From NCBI RefSeq assembly GCF_902713615.1, contig NC_052176.1, forward strand, positions 11,670,243-11,734,242: a DNA stretch of 64,000 bases, read 5' to 3'. This DNA comes from Scyliorhinus canicula. Lineage: Eukaryota. This document shows, in pieces, positions 6,160 through 61,803 of this stretch; positions within the stretch are counted from its first letter, which is position 1; each line of letters starts with the position of its first letter. Below the pieces are notes generated by a model. That model ran no database searches and had not been told where the DNA came from. It worked only from the letters and a program-made list of their open reading frames with translations. Both the position numbers and the translations under genes were made by a program.

Positions 6160-6597
<438 letters not shown>

Positions 6598-6643: not shown

Positions 6644-7133
6644 GCTCACTTTATCTGAAAAAGGCCGAACCATTATCTGACCGTCAGAGATTCTGCTCTG
6701 TTGCTTAATGTGCAAATGTTTCACGCTTTAATGACATCAATCCGCAGCGCATTCTGTGCGCGACATTATTTACGTGTTCAGTATTTATGACACATGTGAA
6801 TTGACGGTGTTTGTTGGGAATAAAAGTCTCTGAACTGAAATTGGGTTACTGTGTGACGCACTTCATACTCGGAGCCTCGAATTAACATCAAACCCTGGCT
6901 CACGATGTGCAGGAAGGTTTTTATGGAAGCAGTTTATTGGGGCAAGAAATCTTGGGAAACTGAAATTATTGTAGCTCCAATAAAAATGCTTTGATATTAC
7001 ATACTGAGCGGCAAAATTGACAACAGCATATTATATAAACGATGAATTTCCCTGGAGACGAGAAACTTCATTATAATGTGAATGTAAATGTAACCGTAAT
7101 GTAACCGGAAGCTCTTTTCCTGAAAGACTTGGT

Positions 7134-7149
7134 GGCTCTTAAAAGAGCC
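7134..7149 (-). terminator. Histone 3' stem-loop of H3
   Basis: Minus strand GGCTCTTTTAAGAGCC, then ACCAA and downstream gaaaagagc. Confidence 0.95.
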
Positions 7150-7181
7150 TTTGTTGTTGTTATTATTGGTGAAGCCGGGTT

Positions 7182-7806
<625 letters not shown>

Positions 7807-8218
7807 TCACAGGGACAGGGAACGGATATTTGAGACCATCGAAAAAAAATCAATCTCGAATTGTGAATATCAAAAACATCTCAATGATTCCTGCTCCCAT
7901 TTTTGTCCCGGATTCGACTCACCCGAGGTTAGATGAATAAAACCGAGCAGGCACAGAATTCCCGCTGTCATTACAATGTCCGTGTTCACTATGTGCGGTT
8001 ACAGGGCTGACTGCGGAGAAAGGTTGTTTCAGACTGTACAGCAAATCTATGTGGCCTTCTAATGAGAAAACAAATGAATGATAGGAAAGGATTTCCTGCT
8101 ATAACGCCACCCGTCTTAACAGGAAATCGAGGTTTCCAGGGTCTGACTCGCTAAACCAGCTCCATGGGTTATTCTGCTGCAATTCTGAGGTCAGTGCTCT
8201 CAATGTGAGGGTTTGGGC

Positions 8219-8234
8219 GGCTCTGAAAAGAGCC
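8219..8234 (-). terminator. Histone 3' stem-loop of H4
   Basis: Minus strand GGCTCTTTTCAGAGCC. Confidence 0.95.
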
Positions 8235-8268
8235 TTTGGGTTTTGTTAAAATAGTCAAATGGAGTTTC

Positions 8269-8589
<321 letters not shown>

Positions 8590-8631
8590 TCAGTCAAATC
8601 GCTGCTGAATGAGAGACGAGCTGCTGCACTT

Positions 8632-8690
8632 TCCTTTATTATACAGCCCGCCCCGACCTGACTGAGAAAGAGAGAGAGGCGGGGAGCAGA
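8632..8690 (-). promoter_or_regulatory. H4 promoter: TATA, GC box, H4 site II-like element
   Basis: Minus strand tcagtcaggtcggggcgggctgtataataaag. Confidence 0.65.
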
Positions 8691-9271
8691 CTGAGTGACA
8701 GACAGAGCAGTGAAATGTCTTTGACCATCCAGCTCCGCCTCCTGCCTGCTCCAACCCACATTTTATATTCCAAACAGAAGTGAAAAGAACGCGCTGAACA
8801 CGTACAAACTGCAACATCACAAAGCAGCTAGTTAGAAACGCGGATCTATTAAATCCAGGCATGTCAGTAATAATCCGGCCTCAGTCCACTCCTTTCTAGA
8901 ACCAGCCCAACTATCTGCTCCCATTTCAACCCCAGCTCCGATTCCATCCCCACACAACTCGGGTCGGGAATTTTACTAACATCCCTTCCAGCTGATATAA
9001 AGTGTTTGAGTTGAGGTGGGATTTCTCCGCCATGTTAACTATTTTACACACTCTTCCCATGAATGTGTCACTGTTCCCCGGACACATCCCGGTTAGGAAG
9101 AAGCAGCAACTTCCCTGTGTTTTAGTGCAGAGTGGGGGGAGAAGCCCGGTGCAGAGCATGTCAGCGAGTGAGCGGCAATACTGGATTGACATTTCTATCT
9201 GAAATCTGCTCCCAGCACCGGGACAGGGATTCATTGGTCGGGGGATCAGCTCTTTCCGGAGAGATGTGGGT

Positions 9272-9287
9272 GGCTCTGAGAAGAGCC
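9272..9287 (-). terminator. Histone 3' stem-loop of H1 copy 1
   Basis: Minus strand GGCTCTTCTCAGAGCC-ACCCA, downstream gaaagagct. Confidence 0.95.
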
Positions 9288-9323
9288 TTTGGGTTCAGAG
9301 GTTTACAATTTGCTCGCGTTCTT

Positions 9324-10001
9324 TCACTTCTTTGCTGGTTTCTTAGCCTTTGCTGATTTCACTTTGGGCTTGACCCTCGATTGGATCTGCTTTTTTCCGC
9401 CCTTGATCTTTTTCACAGGAGAACTTTTCTTCGGGGCTGCTTTCTTCGCGCTCTTTTTGGGAGCTGCCGCCTTCTTGGCTGCGGGTTTCTTGGGAGATTT
9501 CTTGGCTGCGGGTTTCTTGGCTGCTGCTTTCCTGGGAGATTTCTTGGTTGCGGGTTTCTTGAGAGTTTTCTTGGCTGCGGGTTTCTTGGGTGCTGCTTTC
9601 TTGGGAGATTTCTTGGCTGCTGCTTTCTTCACTAAAGGTTTCTTGCCTGCTCCGGTCTTTATCACTTTCCCCCCGGCTGTCTTCTTAACGATCTTGAAGG
9701 AGCCGGAGGCGCCCGTGCCCTTGACCTGAGCCAAGCTGCCGTTGTCCACACTCCTCTTGACACTTTGCTTAATCTGGGACCCCCGTTTATCCACATCGAC
9801 CCCTTTGCTCCACAGCTGCTTCTTTATGGCCTGGAAGGAAACCCCCTTGCGATCGCCGCTATCCGCCACAATCTTGTGGATCAGCTCGGCCAGCCCGGGA
9901 CCTTCTGGTTTCTTCCGGGGAACCACCTTCTTCTGCTTCTTGACAGCCTTGACTGGGGCGGCGACTGGAGGAGCCGTTTCGGCGGCTGCACTTTCGCTCA
10001 T
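9324..10001 (-). CDS. H1: Linker histone H1 copy 1 (divergent globular domain), 225 aa
   Basis: MSESAAAETAPP..., winged-helix ending QVKGTGASGSFK, K/A/P-rich tail with SPKK motifs; stem-loop. Confidence 0.95.
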   Translation of the reverse strand: MSESAAAETAPPVAAPVKAVKKQKKVVPRKKPEGPGLAELIHKIVADSGDRKGVSFQAIKKQLWSKGVDVDKRGSQIKQSVKRSVDNGSLAQVKGTGASGSFKIVKKTAGGKVIKTGAGKKPLVKKAAAKKSPKKAAPKKPAAKKTLKKPATKKSPRKAAAKKPAAKKSPKKPAAKKAAAPKKSAKKAAPKKSSPVKKIKGGKKQIQSRVKPKVKSAKAKKPAKK

Positions 10002-10077
10002 GTCCGGGACTCGGCACAAATTCTCTCCGTCAATGTGAAGTGGCTGAGAAATGAAGCCTCTGGTGGCGGCACTGAGC

Positions 10078-10158
10078 AACTTAAAGGCAGCGAGCGGACG
10101 GGGCGGAGACAACCTGCTCTCAGCTCCAGGCTGCTGCTGCTGCGTCTGTGTTTTTCTC
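10078..10158 (-). promoter_or_regulatory. H1 promoter: AC box, GC box, TATA-like tttaag
   Basis: Minus strand aaaaacaca ... ctccgccccgtccg ... ctttaag; same elements at ~55090-55172. Confidence 0.65.
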
Positions 10159-11322
10159 TGGTCATAAACTCTCCAATTCCACTCAAATTCCAGCTCCACA
10201 GTGTCCCAGGATAAATCCTTCCTGTCTCTCACACTCTAATGTTTGCTGTAGGAAAGGTTTCCCGCGATTTGAAGGCTCCATTTCGGATTTAAACCCGTTT
10301 TACTGATGCACTGTTCGCCCTCTCTCACCCGATCGCTCTCATTTTCCCAACCTTTCCGCAGAAATCTGGAAAGCAGCATCTAAACCGCCCTGAAATCCAA
10401 CTTGGGAAAGTAGGAGGGGATCAGGGGGATTGATTGAATGAACAATATTTCCATTTTGTCCCAGAGGAATTGGGAGATCTGCTGATCAGAGCGGACACAC
10501 AAACACAGTTGGTTTCTCCTGTTTGGCCCGCCCCTTTCACTCTCTCTTCCACAATATTCACATCCACACACAAGGTTTGGAAATTACATTTCCCAGGGCA
10601 GAATTCTCCCTCTTCTCAACATTTGTTTCCAAATCGGTGCCTTAATTGTAGATTTTCATCTCACTTACTGATCAACTGAGTTTTCTGCTCCCTATCTTCT
10701 GTTTCCCTAAATACCCGGCAGCAGCAAGTCATATTTTTAAATCTAAACTCATTGATGACACGCTTTACTTGAATGTGGAAATACAATTGATCTCCTCTCC
10801 AACAGTGGAGATTTTCCTGATTGATGTCATCCTCCTGCACTGCCGGTAACACTGAACCCCAAACTCAACAAGCAGGGACAGACAGTTAAAGAATAGTCCC
10901 ACCCCCTCTGAGAGTGGAGATTTTCACAGTGACACACAGATTCTGACCATTCTGATCCGAACAGCAAATTTAAAAAATAAAGATGGACTCAAAGAGGGAA
11001 CGTGTAAACCAGGAGAACGTGTAAACTAGTGGGGAGTGTAAACCAGGGACAATAATAAATGAGGGGAGTGTGTTCACCAGAGAAATGTGTAAAATCAGTG
11101 GAAGATGCATAATCAAAGACATTCTCCCCGTGTGTGGGTTCCCCCGGGTGCTCAGACTTCCTCCCACAGGCCAAGCATAGAACAGAGAACAGTACACCAC
11201 AGAACAAGCCCTTCGGCCCTCGATGTTGTGCCGAACAATGATCACCCTACTCAACCCCACGTATAAACCCGTAACCCAACTCCTTCTGCCCTGCAGTAAT
11301 TCTCGAGTTCTATGGAAAATGA

Positions 11323-11584
11323 AGTCAGTCGGTGAATTGTTAGTTTGCAGAAAGTATGAGTTTGAGGGGCTGAATGGCAGTGTAATAACAAACAAGCTGC
11401 AGGCAATGGCTGCAAATTGAATATCTCATTGGGACAAACACACAGCTACAAAGGTGATTGGTTGAGCCCTGGGGCGCAGGGCCACTTGCACCCACACACA
11501 CACTGTCCCCCCAACACGGGCTCTATCGGAGGTTTTGCTCCAAATGTGATGACAGTGAAATGGGGAATATTCCCATTGATTCTC
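11323..11584 (+). repeat. Dispersed ~260 bp cluster-specific element 'E', copy 1 of 5
   Basis: Near-identical copies at 23680-23940, 35475-35638 (cut by gap), 48897-49072 (inverted, partial), 57077-57338. Confidence 0.9.
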
Positions 11585-11594
11585 AATGCGGAAT

Positions 11595-11700
11595 TGCTGC
11601 GCAGATCTGCGCATGCCCGGGGTAGCCCCGCCCCCTGCCTGTCGTCACTGAGATTACGCGCGCATGCGCAGCCCCGCCCTCACACACACTCCATTTGCTC
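11595..11700 (+). promoter_or_regulatory. CpG-rich promoter with NRF1-like and GC-box motifs
   Basis: tgcgcatgcc, gcgcatgcgca (11660-11670), two ccccgccc; paralogue at 57345-57435. Confidence 0.6.
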
Positions 11701-12082
11701 AGTGTGGAGACGCTTTGTTCAAACTGAGTGAAATGTCAGGGCCCAGGTCAGCGAGGAAACAGCGTTCTCATTGCAGCAGCCCATCCATTTGGGAGTGTGA
11801 GCAAAGAGGCTCAGAGATCATTACTGACTCGGGGGGAGTTCAGGGAGAATCGGGGGCTGTTTGCAAGAGGCGCAGCGGGAGCCCCATCTTGTTCCGGGAC
11901 TTGGAGTGAGCGGGGGGAAGGGAGAGCTCTTTCTGGGCCTGGCTTATTGTCTGATTCTGGGGCAGGATTTGGACAGTATTTTCTATTTTTACTAATTATC
12001 AGTTGAAAGAATTGTTTAATTTATCATTGGCCTCATCTGACCCTGATTTACAAGAATTTTTTTTCTTCCCAACGTTCATCAG

Positions 12083-12153
12083 ATGAAGAGATGAGTTCCA
12101 AGATGATGATACCTCAGCAACATGAATGTGCAGCCGTCTCCTTCTAACTGACA
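12083..12153 (+). other. Candidate 71-nt internal non-coding exon
   Basis: Branch-like ccctgat, T/C tract, cag| acceptor and aca|GTAAGT donor; conserved at 57835-57905. Confidence 0.45.
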
Positions 12154-12344
12154 GTAAGTACAATATTAATCCAACATTGCAGAGACACAGACACAACATC
12201 AGCTCCACCGTCACAGGGAACAGAAGCAGCCACACTTACATTGAGCTCAAGTCCCAGATAAACATGTCCTATCCAACAGTGACACACAAGAGGGCAGGTG
12301 GGATAACTTTCCACAATTCACCCCTAGTCCATGAACTTTTTGCA

Positions 12345-12657
12345 GACAGTGCAGAAAGAGGCCATTTGGCCCATCGAGTCTTCACCAACCCACTTAAGCC
12401 CACACTTCCACCCTATCCCTGTAACCCAATAACCCCACCTAACCTTTTTTGCTCACTAAGGGCAATTTATCATGGCCAATCCACCTGACCTTCATGACTT
12501 TGGACTGTGGGAGGAAAGCGGAGCACCCGGAGGAAACCCACGCAAACACGGGGAGAACGTGCAGACTCCACACAGACAGTGTCCCAGTGGGTAATCCAAC
12601 CTGGGACCCTGGCGCTGTGAAGCCACAGTGCTATCCACTTGTGCTACCTTGCTGCCC
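12345..12657 (-). mobile_element. HE1-type SINE
   Basis: Reverse complement of the SINE at 19606; paralogue at 58097-58390. Confidence 0.85.
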
Positions 12658-13129
12658 TATCATGGAACGTCGAATCAACTTGTTTTGATAACAGCTTTTC
12701 ATCTGTAAATTAATCAGGAAAGTATTAATTAGGCTATAGATTGAGCAATCAACGTGGAAGTATCCATTTGCACTTTTTTGAAACTTTGTTGGGCTAAAAT
12801 GTATCAGAAGCACTTTAATCTCACAAGTTGTGAACCTTAGGCACATGTAAAAAGTCAGATAGTAGAGCTGATTGAAAAATACATAATTAATCCTAAATTT
12901 GTACTGAGACAAGTCCAAAATAAAATATTGGGGGAATGTCCAATTCACATAACAAGCATGTCTTTCGGGACTTCTGGGAGGAAATGGGAGCATGTGGAGG
13001 AAACCCATGGAGACACGGGGAAAATGTGCAGACTCTGCAGAGGCAGCGACCAAGTGGGAAACAAATCTTGGACCGTGGCGCTGTGAACCTCTCCCCTGAT
13101 ATACACAATGCCCTGTTACAAACTGTTTT

Positions 13130-14168
13130 TTCACACTCCCCTGGTTTGCATGCTGACTTGGTTTCACACTGCCCTGGTTTGCATGCTGACTTGGTTTCAC
13201 ACTGCCCTGGTTTGCATGCTGACTTGGTTTCACACTGCCCTGGTTTGCATGCTGACTTGGTTTCACACTGCCCTGGTTTGCATGCTGACTTGGTTTCACA
13301 CTGCCCTGGTTTGCATGCTGACTTGGTTTCACACTGCCCCTGGTTTGCATGCTGACTTGGTTCACACTGCCCTGGTTTGCATGCTGACTTGGTTTCACAC
13401 TCCCTGGTTTGCATGCTGACTTGGTTTCACACTGCCCTGGTTTGCATGCTGACTTGGTTTCACACTGCCCTGGTTTGCATGCTGACTTGGTTTCACACTG
13501 CCCTGGTTTGCATGCTGACTTGGTTTCACACTGCCCTGGTTTGCATGCTGACTTGGTTTCACACTGCCCTGGTTTGCATGCTGACTTGGTTTCACACTGC
13601 CCTGGTTTGCATGCTGACTTGGTTTCACACTCCCCTGGTTTGCATGCTGACTTGGTTTCACACTCCCTGGTTTGCATGCTGACTTGGTTTCACACTCCCC
13701 TGGTTTGCATGCTGACTTGGTTACACACTGCCCTGGTTTGCATGCTGACTTGGTTTCACACTGCCCTGGTTTGCATGCTGACTTGGTTTCACACTGCCCT
13801 GGTTTGCATGCTGACTTGGTTTCACACTGCCCTGGTTGCATGCTGACTTGGTTTCACACTCCCTGGTTTGCATGCTGACTTGGTTACACACTGCCCTGGT
13901 TTGCATGCTGACTTGGTTTCACACTCCCCTGGTTTGCATGCTGACTTGGTTTCACACTCGCCCTGGTTTGCATGCTGACTTGGTTTCACACTGCCCTGGT
14001 TTGCATGCTGACTTGGTTTCACACTGCCCTGGTTTGCATGCTGACTTGGTTTCACACTGCCCTGGTTTGCATGCTGACTTGGTTTCACACTCCCCTGGTT
14101 TGCATGCTGACTTGGTTTCACACTCCCCTGGTTTGCATGCTGACTTGGTTTCACACTCCCCTGGTTTG
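13130..14168. repeat. 33-bp minisatellite, ~31 units
   Basis: Unit CTGGTTTGCATGCTGACTTGGTTTCACACTGCC with occasional 1-nt indels. Confidence 0.98.
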
Positions 14169-14686
14169 AGCTCTCAACTGATGTACACACTCCCCAATTT
14201 GCACACACTCTTGTTGTGCATCTTTACCAGGTTCCATACACTCCCCTGGTTGAGATACCTCCCCTATTTTACACATTCCCCTAGTTTGCATATTCCCCTG
14301 CTTCACACACTCCCCTGCATTATACGCACTCCTCTGCTTCATACATCCCCCTGCTTCATACACCCCCCTGCGTAATGCACCCCCCTGCGTGATACACCGC
14401 ACTACTTTATGCAGTCCCCTGGTTTACACATCCCCCTGCTGTATGAACTCCCATACTTCATACATCCCCCTGCTTTATACACTCCCCTGGTTCACACATC
14501 CCCCTGCTGTATACACTCCCATGCTTCATACATCCTGCTGTTTAATTACCCCACTGCTTTATACAATCCTCTGCTTGATCCACTCCCCTGGTTTACACAT
14601 CACCCTGCTCTATGCATTGACATGCTTTATCCATCCCCCTGCTTCATAGGTCCCCCTGCTTTATGTACTCCCCTGGACTTTGTTTT

Positions 14687-14812
14687 CGGCCTGCATGGAG
14701 CTTATACACTCCATGATATCTCTCAGTTCTAGCAGTGCTCCCAGGCCTCGTTTCCTGTCCTCCCCCAGAACTGGCAAGTCCAGTCCATCGAGGAATAGCT
14801 TCATCCACGAGT
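14687..14812 (-). mobile_element. L1-clade LINE ORF2 fragment (left remnant, split by the CR1 insertion)
   Basis: Reverse complement resembles 38645-38770; continues at 20041. Confidence 0.75.
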
Positions 14813-15107
14813 TTGCACTGAGTGCTGAATTTGGTGCATTTGACTGCTATAGTGAGAGTTTGGTGACTGAGGGAGTATAAGGGTTCATTTTTATCTAAAG
14901 TCTAGTCTTTTTTTTATTTAGTTAAATAACTTAAAAGGTGCTGTTTGGTTTAGAAGAAGGTGAATTTTCAATCAGCTTTAAACAAGGTTCAACTTGTAGG
15001 TACTTGCAGCTGGAGCTTGTTAATTAGTTAATTGGATAAGGCCAGTTTTCAGAGGCTAGATTCACAGTATAAAAAGGATCCAGCTACAGTGCAGACATTG
15101 TTTGCAC

Positions 15108-15415
15108 TGAGTGCTGAACGTGGTGCATTTGAGTGCTGTAGTGAGAGTTTGGTGACTGAGGGAGTGCTGAATTTGAGTGCTATAGTGAGAGTTTGGTGAC
15201 TGAGGGAGTGCTGAATTTGGTGCATTTGAGTGCTGTAGTAAGAGTTAGGTGACTGAGGGAGTGCTGAATTTGGTGCATTTGAGTGCTATAGTGAGAGTTT
15301 GGTGACTGAGGGAGTGCTGAATTTGGTGCATTTGAGTGCTATAGTGAGAGTTAGGTGACTGAGGGAGTGCTGAATTTGGTGCATTTGAGTGCTATAGTGA
15401 GAGTTAGGTGAGGAG
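15108..15415. repeat. 53-bp tandem repeat in the CR1 5'UTR (~6 units)
   Basis: gagtgctgaatttggtgcatttgagtgctatagtgagagtttggtgactgagg; ~4 units at 62100-62315. Confidence 0.9.
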
Positions 15416-18400
15416 GGAGTAAGGTGCTCCTTTCATTTCATTTCTGCAAAGAGCGAGAAGGGAGCCAGGAGTTCACAGAGTGCAGCCGACTGGGAGCAGA
15501 GTCAGAGGGTGGAGGTCCAGTTGGTCCACAGGGCAGCTATATTCTGTAAGTTAAGAGGGGATGGAGGCTAGGGCAGTTGCATACTCCTCCTGTAGGATGT
15601 GGGTGGTGAGGGATACCACCGGTGTCCCCTCTGACTATACCTGCGGGAAGTGCACCCAACTCCAGCTCCTCGGAGACCGTGTTAGGGAACTAGAGCTGGA
15701 GCTGGATGAACTTCGGATCATCCAGGAGGCAGAGGGGGTAATAGGGAGTCACAGGGAGGTAACCGCACCCAAGGTGCAGGACAGGAGTAGCTGGGTTACA
15801 GTCAGGGGAAGGAAAACAAATGGGCAGACAGTGCAGAGATCCCTCGTGGCCGTTCCCCTTCAAAACAAGTATACTATTTTGGATGCTGTTGGGGGGATGA
15901 CCTACCGGGGGAAGGCCCTAGCGGCCAGGTCTCTGGCACTGAGTCTGGCTCTGGGGCTCAGAGGGGAAGGGGGGGGGGAATAGAAAAGCAATAGTAATAG
16001 GAGATTCAATGGTTAGGGGAATAGATAGGAGATTCTGTGGTCGCGAGCGAGACTCCCGGAAGGTATGTTGCCTCCCTGGGTGCCAGGGCCAGGGATGTCT
16101 CGGATCGTGTCTTCAGAATCCTGAAAGGGGGAGGGTGAGCAGCCAGAAGTCATGGTGCACATTGGTTCAAACGACGGAGGTAGGAAAAGGGGTGTGGAGG
16201 TAATAAACAAGTTTAGGGAGTTAGGCTGGAAGTTAAAGGCCAGGACAGACAGAATTGTCATCACTGGTTTGTTGCCGGTGCCACGTGTCAGCGAGGCTAG
16301 GAATAGGGAGAGAGTGCAGTTGCACACCTGGCTGCAGGAATGGTGCAGGAGGGAGGGCTTCAGGTATTTGGATAATTGGAGAGCATTCTGGGGAAGGTGG
16401 GACCTGTACAAGCAGGACGGGTTGCATCTGAACCAGAGGGGCACCAATATCCCGGGAGGGAGGTTTTCTAGTACTCTTCAGGAGGGTTTAAACTAATTTG
16501 GTAGGGGAATGGGAAACGGATTTGTAGTCCAGCAACTAAGGAAGCCGATATTCAGCTCACCAAAGTGTGTAGTGACGCAGTGGGGAAGGTAACACTGACA
16601 AAGGAGAGTACTTGCAGGCACGGAGATGGGTTGAAGTGTGTATACTTCAACGCAAGAAGCATCAGGAATAAGGTGGGTGAACTTAAGGCATGGATCGGTA
16701 CTTGGGACTAGGATGTGGTGGCCATCACGGAAACTTGGATAGAAAAGGGGCAGAAGCGGTTGTTGGAGGTCCCTGGTTATAGATGTTTGAACAAGATTAG
16801 GGAGGATGGTAAAAAAGGTGGGGGGGGGGGTGGCATTCTTAATTAGAGATAGTACAACAGCTGCAGAAAGTCAGTTCGAGTAGGATCTGCCTACTAAGGT
16901 AGTATGGGTTGAAGTCAGAAATAGGAAAGGAGCAGTCACCTTGTTGGGAGTTTTCTATAGCCCCCCCCCCCCCCCCCATAGCAGCAGAGATGTGGAGGAA
17001 CAGATTTTGGAAAGGTGCAGAAGTCACAGGGTAGTAGGCATGGGTGACTTCTACTTCCCAAACATTGAGTGGAAACTCTTTAGATCAAATAGTTTGGATG
17101 GGGTAGTGTTTGTGTAGTGTGCCCAGGAAGCATTTCTAACACAGTATGTAGATTGTCTGACCACAGGGGAGGCCATATTGGATTTGGTACTTGGTAATGA
17201 ACCAGGGCAAGTGACAGATTTGTTAGTGGGGGAGCATTTTGGAGGTAGTGACTACAATTCTGTGACTTCCACTTCAGCAATGTTTAGGTGCGTGCAACAG
17301 AACAAGGCTTACAATTGGGGGAAAGGTAAATACAATGCTGTAAGACAAGAACTGAAGTGCATAAGTTGGGAACATAGGCTGTCAAGGAAGAACACGTGAA
17401 ATGTGGAACTTGTTCAAGGGTCAGGTACTAAATGTCTTTGATATGTATGTCCCTGTCAGGCAGGGAACATATAGTCAAGTGAGGGAATCATGGTTGACAA
17501 GAGGTTGAATGTCTTGTTAAGAGGAAGAAAGAGACTTGTGTAAGGCTGAGGAAACAAGGTTCAGACAGGGCGCTGGAGGGATACAAGATAGCCAGGAGGG
17601 AACTGAAGAAAGGGATTAGGAGAGCTAAGAGAGGGCATGAAAAATCTTTGGCGGGTAGGATCAAGGAAAACCCCAAGGCCTTTTACACATTTGTGAGAAA
17701 TATGAGAATGACTAGAGCGAGGGTAGGTCCGATCAAGGACAGTAGCGGGTGATTGTGTATTGAGTCTGAAGAGATAGGAGAGGTCTTGAACGAGTACTTT
17801 TCTTGAGTATTTACAAACGAGAGGGGCCATATTGTTGGAGAGGACAGTGTGAAACAGACTGGAAAGCTCGAGGAGATACTTGTCAGGAAGGAAGATGTGT
17901 TGGGCATTTTGAAAAACTTGAGGATAGACAAGGCCCCAGAGCCTGACGGGATACACCCTAGGATTCTATGGGAAGCAAGAAATGAAATTGCAGAGCCGTT
18001 GTCAATGATCTTTTCGAACTCACTGTCAACAGGGGTGGTACCAGGAGGTTGGAGAGTGGCGAATGTTGTGCCTCTGTTCAAAAAAGGGAATAGGGAAAAC
18101 CCTGGGAATTACAGGCCAGTTAGTCTTACTTCGGTGGTAGGCAAAGTAATGGAAAGGGCACTGAGGGATAGGATTTCTGTGCATCTGAAAAGGCACTGCT
18201 TGATTAGGGATAGTCAGCACGGATGTGTGAGGGGTAGGTCTTGCCTTACAAGTCTTATTGAATTCTTTGAGGAGGTGACCAAGCATGTGGATGAAGGTAA
18301 AGCAGTGGATGTAGTGTACATGGATTTTAGTAAGGCATTTGCTAAGGTTCCCATGGTAGGCGTATTCAGAAAGTAAGGAGGCATGGGATAGTGGGAAATT

Positions 18401-27646: not shown

Positions 27647-28033
27647 ATGGCTGACGAGAAGAAACCAACATCGAAACCAGCTGCCAAGAAGGGAGCCAAG
27701 AAAGTCATTAAGAAACCGGCAGTAAAGGGCGGCAAGAAGCGGCGAAGGTCGAGGAAGGAGAGTTACTCCATCTACATCTACAAAGTGATGAAGCAGGTTC
27801 ACCCCGACACCGGCATCTCCTCCAAGGCCATGAGCATCATGAACTCGTTCGTCAGCGATATTTTCGAGCGTATCGCGGGTGAGGCTTCCCGCCTGGCCCA
27901 TTACAACAAGCGCCACACCATCAGCTCCCGGGAGATCCAGACCGCCGTGCGCCTGCTGCTGCCCGGGGAACTGGCCAAGCACGCCGTGTCGGAAGGGACA
28001 AAGGCGGTCACCAAGTACACCAGCTCCAAGTAA
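27647..28033 (+). CDS. H2B: Histone H2B with divergent N-tail, 128 aa
   Basis: [15 protein letters not shown]...[27 protein letters not shown]...AVTKYTSSK. Confidence 0.98.
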
Positions 28034-29075: not shown

Positions 29076-29513
<438 letters not shown>

Positions 29514-30024: not shown

Positions 30025-30345
<321 letters not shown>

Positions 30346-36832: not shown

Positions 36833-37210
<378 letters not shown>

Positions 37211-37359: not shown

Positions 37360-37459
37360 NNNNNNNNNNNNNNNNNNNNNNNNNNNNNNNNNNNNNNNNN
37401 NNNNNNNNNNNNNNNNNNNNNNNNNNNNNNNNNNNNNNNNNNNNNNNNNNNNNNNNNNN
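37360..37459. other. Assembly gap (100 N)
   Basis: Run of n. Confidence 1.
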
Positions 37460-52548: not shown

Positions 52549-52688
52549 CGGTTGTCCATTCACTTACTTCTGGTACGTGAGAATGTCACTAAAGCTTCCG
52601 AATGCAATGAGACACTGCCAATGTTTATATTCGAAATGATCGCAACTGAGGGGTTGGGTGTTGTAGCTCTTTTCCTGACAGACGTGGT

Positions 52689-52704
52689 GGCTCTTAAAAG
52701 AGCC
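52689..52704 (-). terminator. Histone 3' stem-loop of H3 copy 2
   Basis: Minus strand GGCTCTTTTAAGAGCC. Confidence 0.95.
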
Positions 52705-52733
52705 TTTGTTGTTATTATTGGTGAGGCCGGGTT

Positions 52734-53201
<468 letters not shown>

Positions 53202-53850
53202 CTATTTAAGGCATTATAGTGACCGCCCTCTTCTCCTCATTGGATGCAGCCCGATCCCGTGGACAAGTTTGAAAAGAGCGATGGGCGGCAAGGATATCAG
53301 GGCCCTGATTGGTGGACCTGTAACTGACACAACATCAATTTCAAAAAGCCCGCCAATTTCACAGGGACAGGGAACGGATATTTGAGAAAACTAAAAAAAA
53401 ATCAATCTCGAGTTGTGAATATCAAAAACATCTCAATGATTCCTGTTCCCATTTTTGTCTCAGATTCGACTCAATGCCTGAGCACCCGGATTAAATTCAC
53501 CTTCACTCCCTGATTTTTCTACAACAGACTGGGATAAAACTCCCATTGAGGGGTGGAATTCTGTCTCATTTTATTCTGATCAGCGATATCAGTTCTTTCA
53601 TTGCAAAAAGCGATAGATATTAAAGGTAAAATTGACTGATTGTTCGGGGGGAGATGGACGGAGGATGCGGTGATTACAGATCAGTTATGTAAACCGCGTT
53701 TCTGATCAAATTCTGACGTTGAACATTCATGTCCGAAAGTAGATTAATAAAATCCGGCAGGTGCAATTTCACTGGGACAAGTAACGGATATCTGAGAAAA
53801 ACAATCCCAAATTGGAGACATCTAAAACTTCTCAATGATTCCTGGTCCCT

Positions 53851-53953
53851 TTTGCCCAGTCCTTTGCCTCCTTTCCCTCTGCCAGACATGATGCTTCTTC
53901 AGTCAAATCGCTGCTGAATGAGAGACGAGCTGCTGCACTTTCCTTTATTATAC
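53851..53953 (-). pseudogene. H4: H4 remnant: TATA, 5'UTR and first 13 codons only
   Basis: [13 protein letters not shown] (ATG 53889) then unrelated sequence; upstream promoter also missing. Confidence 0.92.
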
Positions 53954-54260
53954 CCGCCTCAGTCAACTCCTTACTAGAACGAGCCCAACTATCTGCTCTC
54001 ATTCCAACCCCAGCTCCGATTCCATCCCCACACAACTCCTCTCCCAGACTGGTTGGGAATTCCACTAACATCCCTTCCCGGTTAGGAAGAGGCAGCAACT
54101 TCCCTGTGTTTTAGTGCAGAGTGGGGGGAGAAGCCCGGTGCAGAGCATGTCAGCGAGTGAGCGGCAATACTGGATTGACATTTCTATCTGAAATCTGCTC
54201 CCAGCACCGGGACAGGGATTCATTGGTCGGGGGATCAGCTCTTTCCGGAGAGATGTGGGT

Positions 54261-54274
54261 GGCTGAGAAGAGCC
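54261..54274 (-). terminator. Defective H1 stem-loop (2-nt deletion)
   Basis: Minus strand GGCTCTTCTCAGCC versus GGCTCTTCTCAGAGCC in copy 1. Confidence 0.85.
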
Positions 54275-54310
54275 TTTGGGTTCAGAGGTTTACAATTTGC
54301 TCGCGTTCTT

Positions 54311-55015
54311 TCACTTCTTTGCTGGTTTCTTAGCCTTTGCTGATTTCGCTTTGGGATTGGCCCTCGATTTGGTCTGCTTTATTCCGCCCTTGATCTTTTC
54401 CACAGAACTTTTCTTCGGGGCTGCTTTCTTCGCGCTCTTTTTGGGAGCTGCCGCCTTCTTGGCTGCTGCTTTCCTGGGAGATTTCTTGGCTGCAGGTTTC
54501 TTGGCTGCGGGTTTCTTGGGTGCTGCTTTCTTGGGAGATTTCTTGGCTGCGGGTTTCTTGGGAGATTTCTTGGCTGCTGCTTTCTTGGCTGCGGGTTTCT
54601 TGGGTGCTGCTTTCTTGGGAGATTTCTTGGCTGCTGCTTTCTTCACTAAAGGTTTCTTGCCTGCTCCGGTCTTTATCACTTTCCCCCCGGCTGTCTTCTT
54701 AACGATCTTGAAGGAGCCGGAGGCGCCCGTGCCCTTGACCTGAGCCAAGCTGCCGTTGTCCACACTCCTCTTGACACTTTGCTTGATCTGGGACCCCCTT
54801 TTATCCACATCGACCCCTTTGCACCGCAGCTGCTTCTTTATGGCCTGTAAGGAAACCCCCTTGCGATCGCCGCTATCCGCCACAATCCTGCAAATCAGCT
54901 CGCCCAGCCCGGGACCTTCTGGTTTCTTCCGCAGAACGGCCTTCTTCTGCTTCTTGACAGCCTTGACTGGGGCGGCGGCTGGAGGAGCCGTTTCGGTGGC
55001 TGCACTATCGCTCAT
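54311..55015 (-). CDS. H1: Linker histone H1 copy 2 (Cys-containing), 234 aa
   Basis: MSDSAATETAPP...ELICRIV...QLRCKG...KGTGASGSFK; intact frame. Confidence 0.93.
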   Translation of the reverse strand: MSDSAATETAPPAAAPVKAVKKQKKAVLRKKPEGPGLGELICRIVADSGDRKGVSLQAIKKQLRCKGVDVDKRGSQIKQSVKRSVDNGSLAQVKGTGASGSFKIVKKTAGGKVIKTGAGKKPLVKKAAAKKSPKKAAPKKPAAKKAAAKKSPKKPAAKKSPKKAAPKKPAAKKPAAKKSPRKAAAKKAAAPKKSAKKAAPKKSSVEKIKGGIKQTKSRANPKAKSAKAKKPAKK

Positions 55016-56227
55016 GTCCGGGACTCGGCACAAATTCTCTCCGTCAATGTGAAGTGGGTGAGAAATGAAGCCTCTGGTGGCGGCACTGAGCAACTTAAAG
55101 GCAGCGAGCGGACGGGGCGGAGACAACCTGCTCTCAGCTCCAGGCTGCTGCTGCTGCCTCTGTGTTTTTCTCTGGTCCCAAACTCTCCAATTCCACTCAA
55201 ATTCCAGCTCCACAGTGTCCCAGGATAAATCCTTCCTGTCTCTCACACTCTAATGTTTGCTGCAGAAAAGGTTTCACGCGATTTGAATGCTCTATTTCGG
55301 ATTTAAACCCGTTTTACTGATGCACTGTTCGCGCTCTCTCACCCGATCGCTCTCATTTTCCCAACCTTTCCGCAGAAATCTGGAAAGCAGCATCTAAACT
55401 GCCCTGAAATCCAACTTGGGAAAGTAGGAGGGGATCAGGGGGATTGACTGAATGAACAATATTTCCATTTTGTCCCAGAGGGATTGGGAGATCTGCTGAT
55501 CAGAGCGGACACACAAACACAGCTGGTTTCTCCTGTTTGGCCCGCCCCTTTCACTCTCTCTTCCACAATATTCACATCCACACACAAGGTTTGGAAATTA
55601 CATTTCCCAGGGCAGAATTCTCCCTCTTCTCAACATTTGTTTCCAAATCGGTGCCTTAATTGTAGATTTTCATCTCACTTACTGATCAACTGAGTTTTCT
55701 GCTCCCTTTCTTCTGTTTCCCTAAATACCCGGCAGCAGCAAGTCATATTTTTAAATCTAAACTCATTGATGACACGTTTTACTTGAATGTGGAAATACAA
55801 TTGATCTCCTCTCCAACAGTGAAGATTTTCCTGATTGATGTCATCCTCCTGCACTGCCGGTAACACTGAACCCCAAATTCAACAAGCAGGGACAGACAGT
55901 TAAAGAATAGTCCCACCCCCTCTGAGAGTGGAGATTTTCACAGTGACACACAGATTCTGACCATTTTGATCCGAACAGCAAATTTTAAAAATAAAGATGG
56001 ACTCAAAGAGGGAACGTGTAAACCAGGAGAACGTGTAAACTAGTGGGGAGTGTAAACCAGGGACAATAATAAATGAGGGGAGTGTGTTAACCAGAGAAAT
56101 GTGTAAAATCAGTGGTAGATGCATAATCAAATATAATTTAATTACAGATTAGTGTGTAAAACCTGTAAAATGAGCGGAATGTATTAAACCTGGGATTGTA
56201 TGGAACTAAAGTAGCCTGTCACAGTGG

Positions 56228-56730
56228 GAAGTGAGTAAACCGGGAGAGGGAGTGAACCGGGGGAGGGAGTAAACCGGGGGGGGGAGAGTGAACCGGGGGG
56301 GGGAGTGAAATGGGGAAGGGAGTGAACCGGGGGAGGGAGTGAACCGGGGGAGGGAGTGAACCGGGAGAGGGAGAGACCCGGGAGAGGGAGTGAACCGGGG
56401 GAGGGAGTGAACCGGGAGAGGGAGTGAACCCGGAGAGTGTGAGAACCGGGAGGGAGAGTGAGAGAACCGGGAGAGGGAGTGAACCGGGAGAGGGAGTGAA
56501 CCGGGAGAGGGAGTGAACCGGGAGAGGAAGTGAACCGGGGGAGGGAGAGAACCGGGAGAGGGAGAGAACCGGGAGAGGGAGAGAACCGGGAGAGGGAGAG
56601 AACTGGGAGGGAGAGTGAGAGAACCGGGGGAGGGAGTGAACTGGGGGAGGGAGTGAACTGGGGAGAGAGTGAACCGGTGGAGTGAGGGAACCGGGGGAGG
56701 GAGTGAACTGGGGGAGGGAGAGACCGGGAG
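56228..56730. repeat. ~17-18-bp purine-rich minisatellite
   Basis: gggagtgaaccgggaga / gggagagaaccgggaga. Confidence 0.92.
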
Positions 56731-57058
56731 GTGGAACAGTGGTTAGCACTGCTGCCTCACTGTGCCAGAGACCTGGGTTTAATTCCAGAGTTGGGTGACT
56801 GCCTGTGTGGGGGTTTGGACCTTCTCCCCGTGTGTGTGGGTGGGTTCCCCCCCGGTGCTCAGATTTCCTCCCACAGGCCAAAGATGTGCAGGATAGGTGG
56901 ATTGGCAAGGCTGAATTATGGCTTCGTATCCAAGGATGTGTTGGTTCAGTGGGGTCTCGGGTTTATGGAGATAGGGCGGGGAGTGCGCCAAGGTGGGATG
57001 CTCTTTCCGAGGGACGGTGATGGGCAGAATTGCTTCCTTCTGCCCTGCAGTGATTCTC
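56729..57058 (+). mobile_element. HE1-type SINE (degenerate)
   Basis: cagtggttagcactgctgcctcac head; aagatgtgcagg core. Confidence 0.8.
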
Positions 57059-57076
57059 GGCTTCTATGGAAAATTA

Positions 57077-57338
57077 AGTCAGTCAGTGGAATGTTAGTTT
57101 GCAGAAAGTGTGAGTTTGAGGGGCTGAATGGCAGTGTAATAACAAACAAGCTGCAGGCAATCGCTGCAAATTGAATATCTCATTGGGACAAACACACAGC
57201 TACAAAGGTGATTGGTTGAGCCCTGGGGCGCAGGGCCACTTGCACCCACACACACACAGTCCCCCCAACACGGGCTCTATCGGAGGTTTTGCTCCAAATG
57301 TGATGACAGTGAAATGCGGAATATTCCCATTGATTCTC
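57077..57338 (+). repeat. Element E copy 5
   Basis: Matches 11323-11584. Confidence 0.9.
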
Positions 57339-58920
57339 TGCTGAATTGCTGCGCGGATCTGCGCATGCCCGGGTAGCCCCGCCCCCTGCCTGTCGTCATC
57401 CTGCGATTGAGAGCGCATGCGCAGCCCCTCCCCCACACTCCATTTGCTCAGTGAGTGGAGACGCTTTGTTCAAACTGAGTGAAATGTCAGGGCCCAGGTC
57501 AGCGAGGAAACAGCGTTCTCATTGCAGCAGCCCATCCATTTGGGAGTGTGAGCAAAGAGGCTCAGAGATCATTACTGACTCGGGGGGAGTTCAGGGAGAA
57601 TCGGGGGCTGTTTGCAAGAGGCGCAGCGGGAGCCCCATCTTGTTCCGGGACTTGGAGTGAGCGGGGGGAAGGGAGAGCTCTTTCTGGGCCTGGCTTATTG
57701 TCTGATTCTGGGGCAGGATTTGGACAGTATTTTCTATTTTTACTAATTATCAGTTGAAAGAATTGTTTAGTTTATCATTGGCCTCATCTGACCCTAATTT
57801 AAAAGAAATATTTTTTCTTCCCCACGTTCAACAGATGAAGAGATGAGTTCCAAGATGATGATTCTTCAGCAACATGAATGTGCAGCCGTCTCCTTCTAAC
57901 TGACAGTAAGTACAATATTAATCCAACATTGCAGAGACACAGACACAACAGCAGCTCCACCGTCACAGAGAACAGAAGCAGTCACACTTACATTGACCTC
58001 AACTCCCAGATAAACATGTCCAATCCAACAGTGATACACGAGAGGGCAGGTGGGATAATTGTCCACAATTCACTCCTAGTCCATGAACTTTTTGAATACA
58101 GTGCAGAAAGAGGCCATTTGGCCCATCGAGTCTGCACCAACCCACTTAAGCCCTCACTTTCACCCTACCCCCATAACCCAATAACCCCACCTAACATTGT
58201 TTGCTCACTGAGGGCAATTTATCATGGCCAATCCACCTGACCTTCATTTCTTTGGACTGTGGGAGGAAACCCACGCAGACACAGGGAGAACGGGCAGACT
58301 CCACACAGACAGTGTCCCAGCGGGTAATCCAACCTGGGACCCTGGTGCTGTGAAGTCACAGTGCTATCCACTTGTGCTACCTTGCTGCCCTATCATGGAA
58401 CGTCGAATCAACTTGTTTTGATAACAGCTTTTCATCTGTAAATTAATCAGGAAAGTATTAATTAGGCTATCGATTGAGCAATCAACGTGGAAGTATCCAT
58501 TTGCACTGTTTTGAAACTTTGTTGGACTAAAATGTTTCAAAAGCACTTTAATCTCACAAGTTGTGAACCTTAGGCACATGTAAAAAGTCAGATAGTACAG
58601 CTGATTGAAAAATACATAATTAATAATTAACAGGCTGATGGGCCTGTTCTGTGCTGTACTGTTCTATGTTCTATGCTCTAATCCTAAATTTGTACTGAGA
58701 CAAGTCCAAAATAAAATATTGGGGGAATGTCCAATTCACATAACAAGCATGTCTTTCGGGACTTCTGGGAGGAAACAGGAGCATGTTGAGGAAACCCATG
58801 GAGACACGGGGAAAATGTGCAGACTCTGCAGAGGCAGCGACCAAGTAGGAAACAAATCTTGGACCGTGGCTCTGTGAACCTCTCCCCTGATATACACAAT
58901 GCCCTGTTACAAACTGTTTT

Positions 58921-60717
58921 TTCACACTCCCCTGGTTTGCATGCTGACTTGGTTCACACTGCCCTGGTTTGCATGCTGACTTGGTTTCACACTGCCCTGG
59001 TTTGCATGCTGACTTGGTTCACACTGCCCTGGTTTGCATGCTGACTTGGTTTCACACTCCCCTGGTTTGCATGCTGACTTGGTTTCACACTCGCCTGGTT
59101 TGCATGCTGACTTGGTTTCACACTGCCCTGGTTTGCATGCTGACTTGGTTTCACACTGCCCTGGTTTGCATGCTGACTTGGTTTCACACTGCCCTGGTTT
59201 GCATGCTGACTTGGTTTCACACTGCCCTGGTTTGCATGCTGACTTGGTTTCACACTGCCCTGGTTTGCATGCTGACTTGGTTTCACACTGCCCTGGTTTG
59301 CATGCTGACTTGGTTCACACTCCCCTGGTTTGCATGCTGACTTGGTTTCACACTGCCCTGGTTTGCATGCTGACTTGGTTTCACACTGCCCTGGTTTGCA
59401 TGCTGACTTGGTTTCACACTGCCCTGGTTTGCATGCTGACTTGGTTACACACTGCCCTGGTTTGCATGCTGACTTGGTTTCACACACGCCTGGTTTGCAT
59501 GCTGACTTGGTTTCACACTCCCCTGGTTTGCATGCTGACTTGGTTTCATACTCCCCTGGTTTGCATGCTGACTTGGTTTCACACTCCCCTGGTTTGCATG
59601 CTGACTTGGTTTCACACTGCCCTGGTTTGCATGCTGACTTGGTTTCACACTCCCCTGGTTTGCATGCTGACTTGGTTTCACACTGCCCTGGTTTGCATGC
59701 TGACTTGGTTTCACACTCCCCTGGTTTGCATGCTGACTTGGTTTCACACTGCCCTGGTTTGCATGCTGACTTGGTTTCACACTCCTCTGGTTTGCATGCT
59801 GACTTGGTTTCACACTGCCCTGGTTTGCATGCTGACTTGGTTTCACACTGCCCTGGTTTGCATGCTGACTTGGTTTCACACTGCCCTGGTTTGCATGCTG
59901 GCTTGGTTTCACACTGCCCTGGTTTGCATGCTGACTTGGTTTCACACTGCCCTGGTTTGCATGCTGACTTGGTTTCACACTGCCCTGGTTTGCATGCTGA
60001 CTTGGTTTCACACTGCCCTGGTTTGCATGCTGACTTGGTTTCACACTGCCCTGGTTTGCATGCTGACTTGGTTTCACACTCCCCTGGTTTGCATGCTGAC
60101 TTGGTTACACACTCCCCTGGTTTGCATGCTGACTTGGTTACACACTCCCCTGGTTTGCATGCTGACTTGGTTACACACTCCCCTGGTTTGCATGCTGACT
60201 TGGTTTCACACTGCCCTGGATTGCATGCTGACTTGGTTACACACTCCCCTGGTTTGCATGCTGACTTGGTTACACACTCCCCTGGTTTGCATGCTGACTT
60301 GGTTACACATTGCCCTGGTTTGCATGCTGACTTGGTTTCACACTGCCCTGGTTTGCATGCTGACTTGGTTACACACTGCCCTGGTTTGCATGCTGACTTG
60401 GTTTCACACTGCCCTGGTTTGCATGCTGACTTGGTTACACACTCCCTGGTTTGCATGCTGACTTGGTTTCACACTGCCCTGGTTTGCATGCTGACTTGGT
60501 TTCACACTCGCCTGGTTTGCATGCTGACTTGGTTACACACTGCCCTGGTTTGCATGCTGACTTGGTTTCACACTGCCCTGGTTTGCATGCTGACTTGGTT
60601 TCACACTGCCCTGGTTTGCATGCTGACTTGGTTTCACACTCCCCTGGTTTGCATGCTGACTTGGTTTCACACTCCTCTGGTTTGCATGCTGACTTGGTTA
60701 CACACTCGCCTGGTTTG
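58921..60717. repeat. 33-bp minisatellite, ~54 units
   Basis: Same unit and same flanks as 13130-14168. Confidence 0.98.
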
Positions 60718-60949
60718 AGCTCTCAACTGATGTACACACTCCCCAATTTGCACACACTCTTGTTGTGCATCTTTACCAGGTTCCATACACTCCCCTGGTT
60801 GAGATACCTCCCCTAATTTACACATTCCCCTAATTTGCTCTTTCCCCTGCTTCACACACTCCCCTGCATTACACAGACTCGCCTGCATTATACGCACTCC
60901 CCTGCTTTCTACACTCCCGTTTTCCACACTCCTCTGCTTCATACACTCC

Positions 60950-61445
60950 CCTAAGTGATGCACCCCCTGCGTGAAGCACTCCCCTGCGTGATGCACCCCT
61001 CCCTGCATGATGCACTCCCCTGCGTGATGCAGTCCCCTGCGTGATGCACTCCCCTGCGTGATGCACCCCCCCTGCGTGATGCACCCCCCTGCGTGATGCA
61101 CCCCCCTGCGTGATGCACCCCCCTGCGTAATGCACCCCCCCTGCGTGATGCACCCCCCCTGCGTGATGCACCCCCCCTGCGTGATGCACCCCCCCTGCGT
61201 GATGCACCCCCCCTGCGTGATGCACCCCCCCTGCGTGATGCACCCCCCCTGCGTGATGCACCCCCCCTGCGTGATGCACCCCCCTGCGTGATGCACCCCC
61301 CCTGCGTGATGCACCCCCCCTGCGTGATGCACCCCCCCTGCGTGATGCACCCCCCCTGCGTGATGCACCCCCCCTGCGTGATGCACCCCCCCTGCGTGAT
61401 GCACCCCCCCTGCGTGATGCACCCCCCCTGCGTGATGCACCGCCC
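60950..61445. repeat. 18-19-bp minisatellite, ~26 units
   Basis: ccccccctgcgtgatgca. Confidence 0.95.
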
Positions 61446-61803
61446 TGTGTGATACACCGCCCTGCTTTATGCAGTCCCTTGGTTTACACATCCCCCTGCT
61501 GTATACACTCCCATGCTTCATCCATCCTGCTGCTTAATACACCCCCTGCTTTATACACTCCTCTGCTTGATACACTCCCCTGGTTTACACATCACCCTGC
61601 TCTATGCACTGCTATGCTTTATACATCCCCCTGCTTCATAGGTCCCCCTGCTTTATGTACTCCCCTGGACTTTGTTTTCGGCCTGCATGGAGCTTATACT
61701 CTCCATGATCTCTCTCAGTTCTAGCAGTGCTCCCAGGCTCCGTTTCCTGTCCTCCCCCAGAACTGGCAAGTCCAGTCCATCGAGGAATATCTTCATCCAC
61801 GAG

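Follow-up and report, generated by a model that had tools for sequence, protein, structure and literature searches.

Among linker histones, fast evolution is a known trait of the germline variants and of sperm H1-derived proteins, and the mRNAs of H1oo, H1T2 and HILS1 are polyadenylated. These three proteins, together with H1t and PL-I, have the linker-histone fold in common with the H1 of the small-spotted catshark, Scyliorhinus canicula. The catshark globular domain scores best against H1.4, H1.2, H1.3, H1.1 and GH1, and the likeness to mammalian H1.1–H1.5 and chicken GH1 covers both protein and gene: a tripartite protein with a PF00538 winged helix and a Lys/Ala/Pro-rich tail bearing S/TPKK motifs, and an intronless gene with an H1-box promoter that lies in a core-histone cluster and carries a 3' stem-loop and a downstream element, the last two in copy A of the catshark pair described here. 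In mammals, the H1.1–H1.5 genes have dN/dS values of 0.09–0.19 (PMC5400378).

The window analysed in this work, a 64-kb stretch of S. canicula DNA, is a histone gene cluster of three partial units that holds two H1 genes, copy A and copy B (Table 1). A first-pass annotation of the sequence had singled out this pair as strongly divergent among frozen core histones and proposed a germline H1 subfamily under positive or relaxed selection. A literature search found no work on catshark H1 genes or their expression; in two shark proteomics papers, H1 comes up no more than incidentally.

The histone cluster and its two H1 genes

Table 1. Positions of histone genes, regulatory elements and repeats in the 64-kb catshark window.
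Feature	Position	Strand	Description
H2A	6208-6597	+	unit A
Larger segmental duplication	7110-17114		roughly 10 kb; paired with 52665-63998; holds H1 copies A and B
H3	7182-7592	-	unit A
H4	8269-8580	-	unit A; intact, near H1 copy A
H1 copy A duplicated block	9087-11117		pairs with 54076-56131 (copy B block)
Copy A histone 3' stem-loop	9247-9292	-	Rfam RF00032, 34.7 bits (gathering score 34)
Copy A purine-rich downstream element	about 9247-9256	-	after stem-loop
H1 copy A (P0001)	9324-10001	-	unit A; intact intronless ORF, 225 aa, PF00538
Copy A promoter	10080-10153	-	H1 box AAACACA, GC box CCGCCCC, TATA-like TTTAAG
Tandem array, ~33-bp period	13129-14168		in one duplication copy
H2B	27647-28033	+	middle unit; intact
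H2A	29124-29513	+	middle unit
H4	30025-30336	-	middle unit
H2B-like copy	36833-37207	+	
N runs	37360-37459		
H3	52734-53144	-	unit B
H4 remnant	53674-53889	-	unit B; dead
Copy B damaged 3' stem-loop	54261-54274	-	2-bp deletion, 3' arm
H1 copy B (P0006)	54311-55015	-	unit B; intact intronless ORF, 234 aa, PF00538
Copy B promoter	55094-55167	-	same H1 box, GC box and TATA-like element
Tandem array, ~33-bp period	58920-60717		in the other duplication copy

The core histones of the cluster are frozen, as the first-pass annotation had put it, for H3 and H4 but not for H2A. The H3 genes of units A and B differ at 0 of 411 nucleotides and the H4 copies encode the same protein with one synonymous change, in agreement with the 0–1 differences counted earlier, whereas the H2A genes of unit A and the middle unit differ by two amino acids (98.45% identity, dN 0.019, dS 0.027). 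Divergence in the 5' flank of the H3 pair is 3.65%, at which rate the genes should have some 3.7 synonymous changes; none was observed (P of zero = 0.024), which suggests that recent conversion or silent-site selection underlies the nucleotide identity of H3. Both H2A ORFs have an in-frame upstream ATG extension of 16–17 codons. The H2B-like copy, which sits just ahead of the N runs, is 87% identical to the intact H2B, contains an in-frame stop inside the histone fold and is probably a pseudogene. Each copy of the segmental duplication contains a long array of ~33-bp repeats, which differs in copy number between the two and spans about 1 kb in one and about 1.8 kb in the other. Elsewhere in the genome, gene maps place H4, H3, H2A and H2B as neighbours of the S. 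canicula H1 paralogues.

Both H1 proteins contain a winged-helix globular domain of three helices and a beta-hairpin wing, as assigned by PF00538 and by an AlphaFold2 model with helices at residues 37–48, 56–65 and 70–87, strands at 90–92 and 101–104, and a pLDDT of 88–91 over the domain. PDB matches to GH1 and H1.x were found with E values of about 6e-18. After residue 108, the model has low pLDDT and no secondary structure, corresponding to a disordered lysine-rich C-terminal tail. The tails are 117–126 aa long, with S/TPKK motifs and 46–48 Lys against 2 Arg; neither arginine enrichment nor a protamine-like composition was found in them, as in the other five S. canicula paralogues. The globular domain gives 65–68 bits against human H1.1–H1.4 and chicken GH1, compared with 36–38 for H1.0, 31–34 for H1x and 28–31 for H5, while its identity to chicken GH1 and human H1.2, counted from the alignments, is about 51–54%. 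The statement of the first-pass annotation that the domain departs strongly from somatic vertebrate H1 is therefore right as far as identity goes, but the domain still scores by far best against H1.1–H1.5 and GH1. Of the 120 best hits that the protein search listed, those nearest to both copies come from S. canicula, followed by S. torazame, and are named 'histone H1-like'. Because no other S. canicula H1 family appears among these 120 best hits, the multi-copy family would be the species' only visible candidate for bulk somatic H1 within that set.

The promoters of the two genes are built from the same elements, located 80–150 nt upstream of the ATG. The composite pattern occurs twice in the window, once per H1 gene, and was not found in any of 100 shuffles. 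Vertebrate H1 promoters usually have a CCAAT box; none was seen by eye between the GC box and the TATA-like element in either H1 promoter (10002–10420 and 55016–55434). An intronless gene, a core-histone cluster and an H1-box promoter are replication-dependent traits of both copies, to which copy A adds the stem-loop and the downstream element. The copy A stretch is represented by 65–85% of its sampled words in 20 sequencing runs from seven studies, with tissues unlabelled and no run recorded as RNA. For copy B, the N-terminal words reach at most 45% in any RNA-guessed run, in a stretch that is not comparable with that of copy A.

Copy B gave no Rfam Histone3 match at the gathering score, and the 2-bp deletion in its stem-loop is the sole difference between the copies over 181 aligned columns past the stop codon. 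Because the stem-loop-binding protein recognises a 6-bp stem and a 4-nt loop and this stem-loop is damaged, the copy B mRNA would probably be poorly processed at its 3' end. As this deletion falls within a short run of dinucleotides, an error in the assembly could account for it. Next to copy B, the H4 remnant encodes 13 residues of H4 followed by unrelated sequence. Copy B may be impaired and on its way to becoming a pseudogene; against its being simply dead stand an intact ORF and promoter and a central block without any amino-acid change.

Divergence between copies A and B

In the codon alignment, copies A and B differ non-synonymously at 24 codons and synonymously at four. Eleven amino-acid differences fall in residues 1–65 (E3D, A7T, V13A, V26A, P28L, A38G, H42C, K43R, F56L, W64R and S65C) and three purely synonymous codons (41, 73 and 77) in the first 93, exactly as the first-pass annotation had counted by eye; the substitutions H42C, W64R and S65C and the reshuffled tail repeats that it had pointed out are likewise present. 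The tails also differ by three in-frame indels, two of 5 residues and one of a single residue. Trp64 of copy A is separated from the Arg of copy B by a single base (TGG/CGG) at a CpG, and most other S. canicula H1 paralogues have Arg at this position; Cys65 is one step from Ser. Decay of CpG sites was considered as a source of the differences and ruled out: CpG transitions account for 4 of the 32 differences, and the observed/expected CpG ratio of the H1 genes, 0.62–0.65, is higher than the 0.46 of the window.

The amino-acid changes are confined to the N-terminal tail, helices 1–2 and the distal tail. When placed on the AlphaFold2 model, the globular differences (positions 38, 42, 43, 56, 64 and 65) are predicted to lie in helix 1 and at both ends of helix 2, and the modelled helix 3 and wing contain no difference between the copies. 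The net charge of the tail is almost the same in the two proteins (+48 and +49) despite 13 substitutions and a 9-residue difference in length. Such conservation of tail charge has also been described for mammalian H1 (PMC5400378).

Selection was estimated from the two sequences by the Nei-Gojobori method with a conditional 95% interval. This method counts 25 non-synonymous and seven synonymous changes, the latter exceeding the four synonymous codons because three two-hit codons each include a silent step, and gives dN = 0.050, dS = 0.046 and dN/dS = 1.09 (95% CI 0.46–2.99). A ratio above 1 is not significant for the pair, either with the Nei-Gojobori counts (p = 0.52) or with the raw 24:4 codons (p = 0.18), whereas a ratio of 0.19 is rejected (p = 5e-6) and so is 0.5 (p = 0.04). 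On average, the pair evolves as if nearly neutral, and not demonstrably above neutral. The earlier proposal of positive or relaxed selection thus survives in its second half, given a dN/dS of 1.09 against 0.09–0.19 in mammals, and not in its first. The pair can serve as a calibration for such by-eye counts: the 24:4 excess is striking, but it equals the neutral expectation for this Lys/Ala/Pro-rich gene, because 515 of the 672 aligned sites (about 77%) are non-synonymous.

The changes are distributed unevenly along the gene. Codons 1–65 carry 12 non-synonymous and three synonymous changes (regional dN/dS 1.29) and codons 151 to the end carry 13 and two (regional dN/dS 1.96); neither regional ratio is significantly above 1. 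Codons 66–150, which encode helix 3, the wing and the proximal tail, carry two synonymous changes and no non-synonymous change; if they had changed as fast as the ends, 13.9 would be expected (P = 9e-7), and if they had followed the non-coding DNA, 6.6 (P = 0.0013). Constraint therefore persists in the parts of the protein to which H1 function is generally assigned, because this central stretch is unchanged and the tail charge is conserved.

To place these numbers against the surrounding DNA, the coding sequence was compared with the non-coding sequence of the duplication, with the 3' flank of copy A taken as 9087–9262. All non-coding DNA of the duplication differs at 212 of 5886 positions (3.6%, with a range of 0.6–8% by block) and the immediate H1 flanks at 23 of 1351 (1.7%). 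The whole H1 coding sequence, at 32/675 (4.7%), is not different from the duplication non-coding rate (p = 0.16). When the gene is divided, the ends (30/432, 6.9%) are above this rate (p = 0.0016) and the centre (2/240, 0.8%) is below it (p = 0.018). The coding ends thus show 2-fold the divergence of the duplication non-coding DNA and 4-fold that of the immediate flanks, which is not predicted by simple neutral decay after duplication. Synonymous divergence is raised at the ends as well, with five changes at about 101 sites.

Paralogue variants and the origin of the differences

The protein search recovered five further distinct H1 paralogues from S. canicula, one of which also has a shorter X2 isoform, and seven from S. 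torazame. We compared the seven S. canicula proteins with one another at the protein level, the codon-level data being those of copies A and B. For 14 of the 24 differences between A and B, both states are carried by other S. canicula paralogues. Both the V-V-P and the A-V-L version of residues 26–28 occur among these; Thr7 and Cys42 are shared with P0012 and Trp64 with P0004; and the C-terminal end (residues 206–214) exists in two versions, of which P0005 has one and P0012 the other. Changes private to one copy number about 3–5 in A and about 4 in B, and every one of the seven paralogues has singleton residues (3–14 in each). The four-gamete test is failed by 106 of the 171 pairs among 19 informative columns, which means that the variants are combined reticulately. 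In a maximum-likelihood tree, all seven S. canicula proteins group together (98/94), apart from those of S. torazame and without any supported branching inside the clade, and the Scyliorhinus stem branch is long (0.32). The tree is star-like within species and shows no long-lived H1 subtypes. The simplest reading is that the family is young or continually homogenised and that a pool of variants is shuffled between its copies.

We therefore favour, with a probability of roughly 0.68, the explanation that these are ordinary replication-dependent, multi-copy H1 genes under uneven and weak constraint whose variants are swapped among at least seven copies. Constraint would keep helix 3, the beta-hairpin wing and the proximal tail fixed, and the N-terminal tail, the surfaces of helices 1–2 and the distal tail would tolerate substitutions as long as the protein remains lysine-rich and highly basic. 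Where at least seven copies can stand in for one another, selection on any one of them would be weak, and private amino-acid changes would appear in every paralogue; we infer this step from redundancy to weak constraint, as we do the conversion mechanism that follows. Exchange among the genes of the cluster, by gene conversion or unequal crossing-over, would shuffle the standing paralogue variants, and neighbouring copies would thereby come to differ by whole imported patches. We propose that it is because of such patches that the coding ends exceed the adjacent non-coding DNA in divergence and that synonymous divergence rises there too. Copy A has the full signals of a working S-phase histone gene and would be expressed in somatic cells during S phase, and copy B would probably have lost efficient 3' processing and with it some of its function.

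Several observations sit less easily with shuffling under weak constraint. The variant pool is mostly non-synonymous, which is not explained by gene conversion alone, and diversifying selection would likewise raise the divergence of the coding ends. Some of the states shared with paralogues could be recurrent mutations, for example Trp64 with its one-base difference at a CpG. The private changes are symmetric between the copies, with no sign of faster decay in B. Decay of copy B alone, considered separately, was likewise not supported by the polarity of the changes.

That copy B, or both copies, is a young pseudogene which has yet to acquire a stop codon, and that the non-synonymous excess is neutral decay, appears unlikely. 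It would account for a dN/dS of about 1, and copy B has the stem-loop deletion, no Rfam match and a destroyed H4 as its neighbour. The in-frame stop in the H2B-like copy demonstrates that genes do die in this cluster, and no RNA-guessed run contained more than 45% of the sampled N-terminal words of copy B, none of the runs being recorded as RNA. However, both ORFs are intact with every tail indel in frame, the 85 central codons contain none of the 6.6 amino-acid changes expected at the non-coding rate, and the tail charge is conserved along with both promoters. In addition, private changes are not concentrated on copy B, and the signals of copy A are complete.

We consider positive selection on the pair somewhat less probable still. 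According to this explanation, diversifying selection has acted on the N-terminal third and the distal tail, and the copies are gaining distinct chromatin-binding properties. The regional ratios of 1.29 and 1.96 point in that direction, as do the divergence of the coding ends relative to the non-coding DNA and flanks, the clustering of changes on helices 1 and 2 that spares the DNA-reading helix 3 and the wing, and the positive selection reported for mammalian H1.1 (PMC5400378). On the other hand, neither the overall dN/dS nor the regional ratios exceed 1 significantly, and the synonymous divergence of the ends is raised too, as would be the case for imported sequence. Since 14 of the 24 differences are shared reticulately with paralogues, they do not count as separate events for this pair, and the star-like tree within species shows no long-lived subtypes.

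In a different version, which we regard as a long shot, diversifying selection would act across the whole family on the exposed surfaces of helices 1–2 and the tail ends and preserve coding differences between the copies, with conversion homogenising the surrounding non-coding DNA. If true, this would account both for coding ends 2–4 times as divergent as their flanks and for a variant pool made up almost wholly of non-synonymous changes, and a somatic linker histone would be acting like a conflict-driven gene family.

A germline- or early-embryo-specific subfamily of the sperm, testis or oocyte type is very improbable. In some animals, oocytes and embryos are supplied by large tandem histone clusters, and the low globular identity to tetrapod somatic H1 (about 51–54%), the long Scyliorhinus stem branch and the Trp and Cys residues of some copies could be taken in its favour, but no tested feature supports the germline assignment of the first-pass annotation: the H1-box promoter, the core-histone cluster and the stem-loop and downstream element of copy A are canonically replication-dependent, the tail is rich in Lys rather than Arg, the globular domain is nearest to H1.1–H1.5, and no alternative H1.1–H1.5-like family of S. 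canicula occurs among the 120 best hits listed. Trp and Cys, which the first-pass annotation had noted as rare in somatic H1 but present in sperm H1-derived proteins, are no mark of a sperm protein here, as Cys is normal in the globular domain of the cluster H1s of other sharks and both Trp64 and Cys65 are single-step changes. According to Gusse and Chevaillier, dogfish sperm is reportedly packaged by protamines, which also counts against such a subfamily.

Comparison with known H1 systems

The closest relatives outside Scyliorhinus among the matches listed are the 'histone H1-like' proteins of Cetorhinus, Carcharodon, Mustelus, Heptranchias and Pristiophorus, with E values of 1e-33 to 1e-45. 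The cluster H1s of other sharks and rays have the same architecture and tail type, with a globular identity to Scyliorhinus of 57–73%. Variation of this domain is general in sharks, at 57–76% identity between orders. Relative to the outgroup Heptranchias, the identity is 61–65% for Scyliorhinus, compared with 76% for Cetorhinus and 71% for Mustelus, which suggests a modest acceleration in the Scyliorhinus lineage or a comparison between paralogues.

From the germline H1s, with which they share the fold, the catshark proteins differ in having a tail without Arg enrichment, and their genes in lying in canonical core-histone units with, in copy A, the stem-loop signals. From tetrapod H1, they differ in their globular identity of about 51–54% and in that the paralogues cluster by species in an unresolved star. 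The differences from mammals are a pairwise dN/dS of about 1 against 0.09–0.19 and a CCAAT box that was not seen by eye. Tail indels by repeat slippage and signs of recombination are described for mammalian H1 (PMC5400378) and are likewise found in the catshark genes.

For multi-copy histone clusters in general, the comparison implies that much of the difference between neighbouring copies can be shuffled family variation rather than new change. If the pattern extends to the whole family, sharks would lend themselves to working out which parts of H1 are important. The net charge, helix 3, the wing and the proximal tail seem to be, and the exact sequence elsewhere may not be. The mammalian H1.1–H1.5 are strongly conserved subtypes, whereas the catshark H1s have an end-region dN/dS of about 1 and form no stable subtypes.
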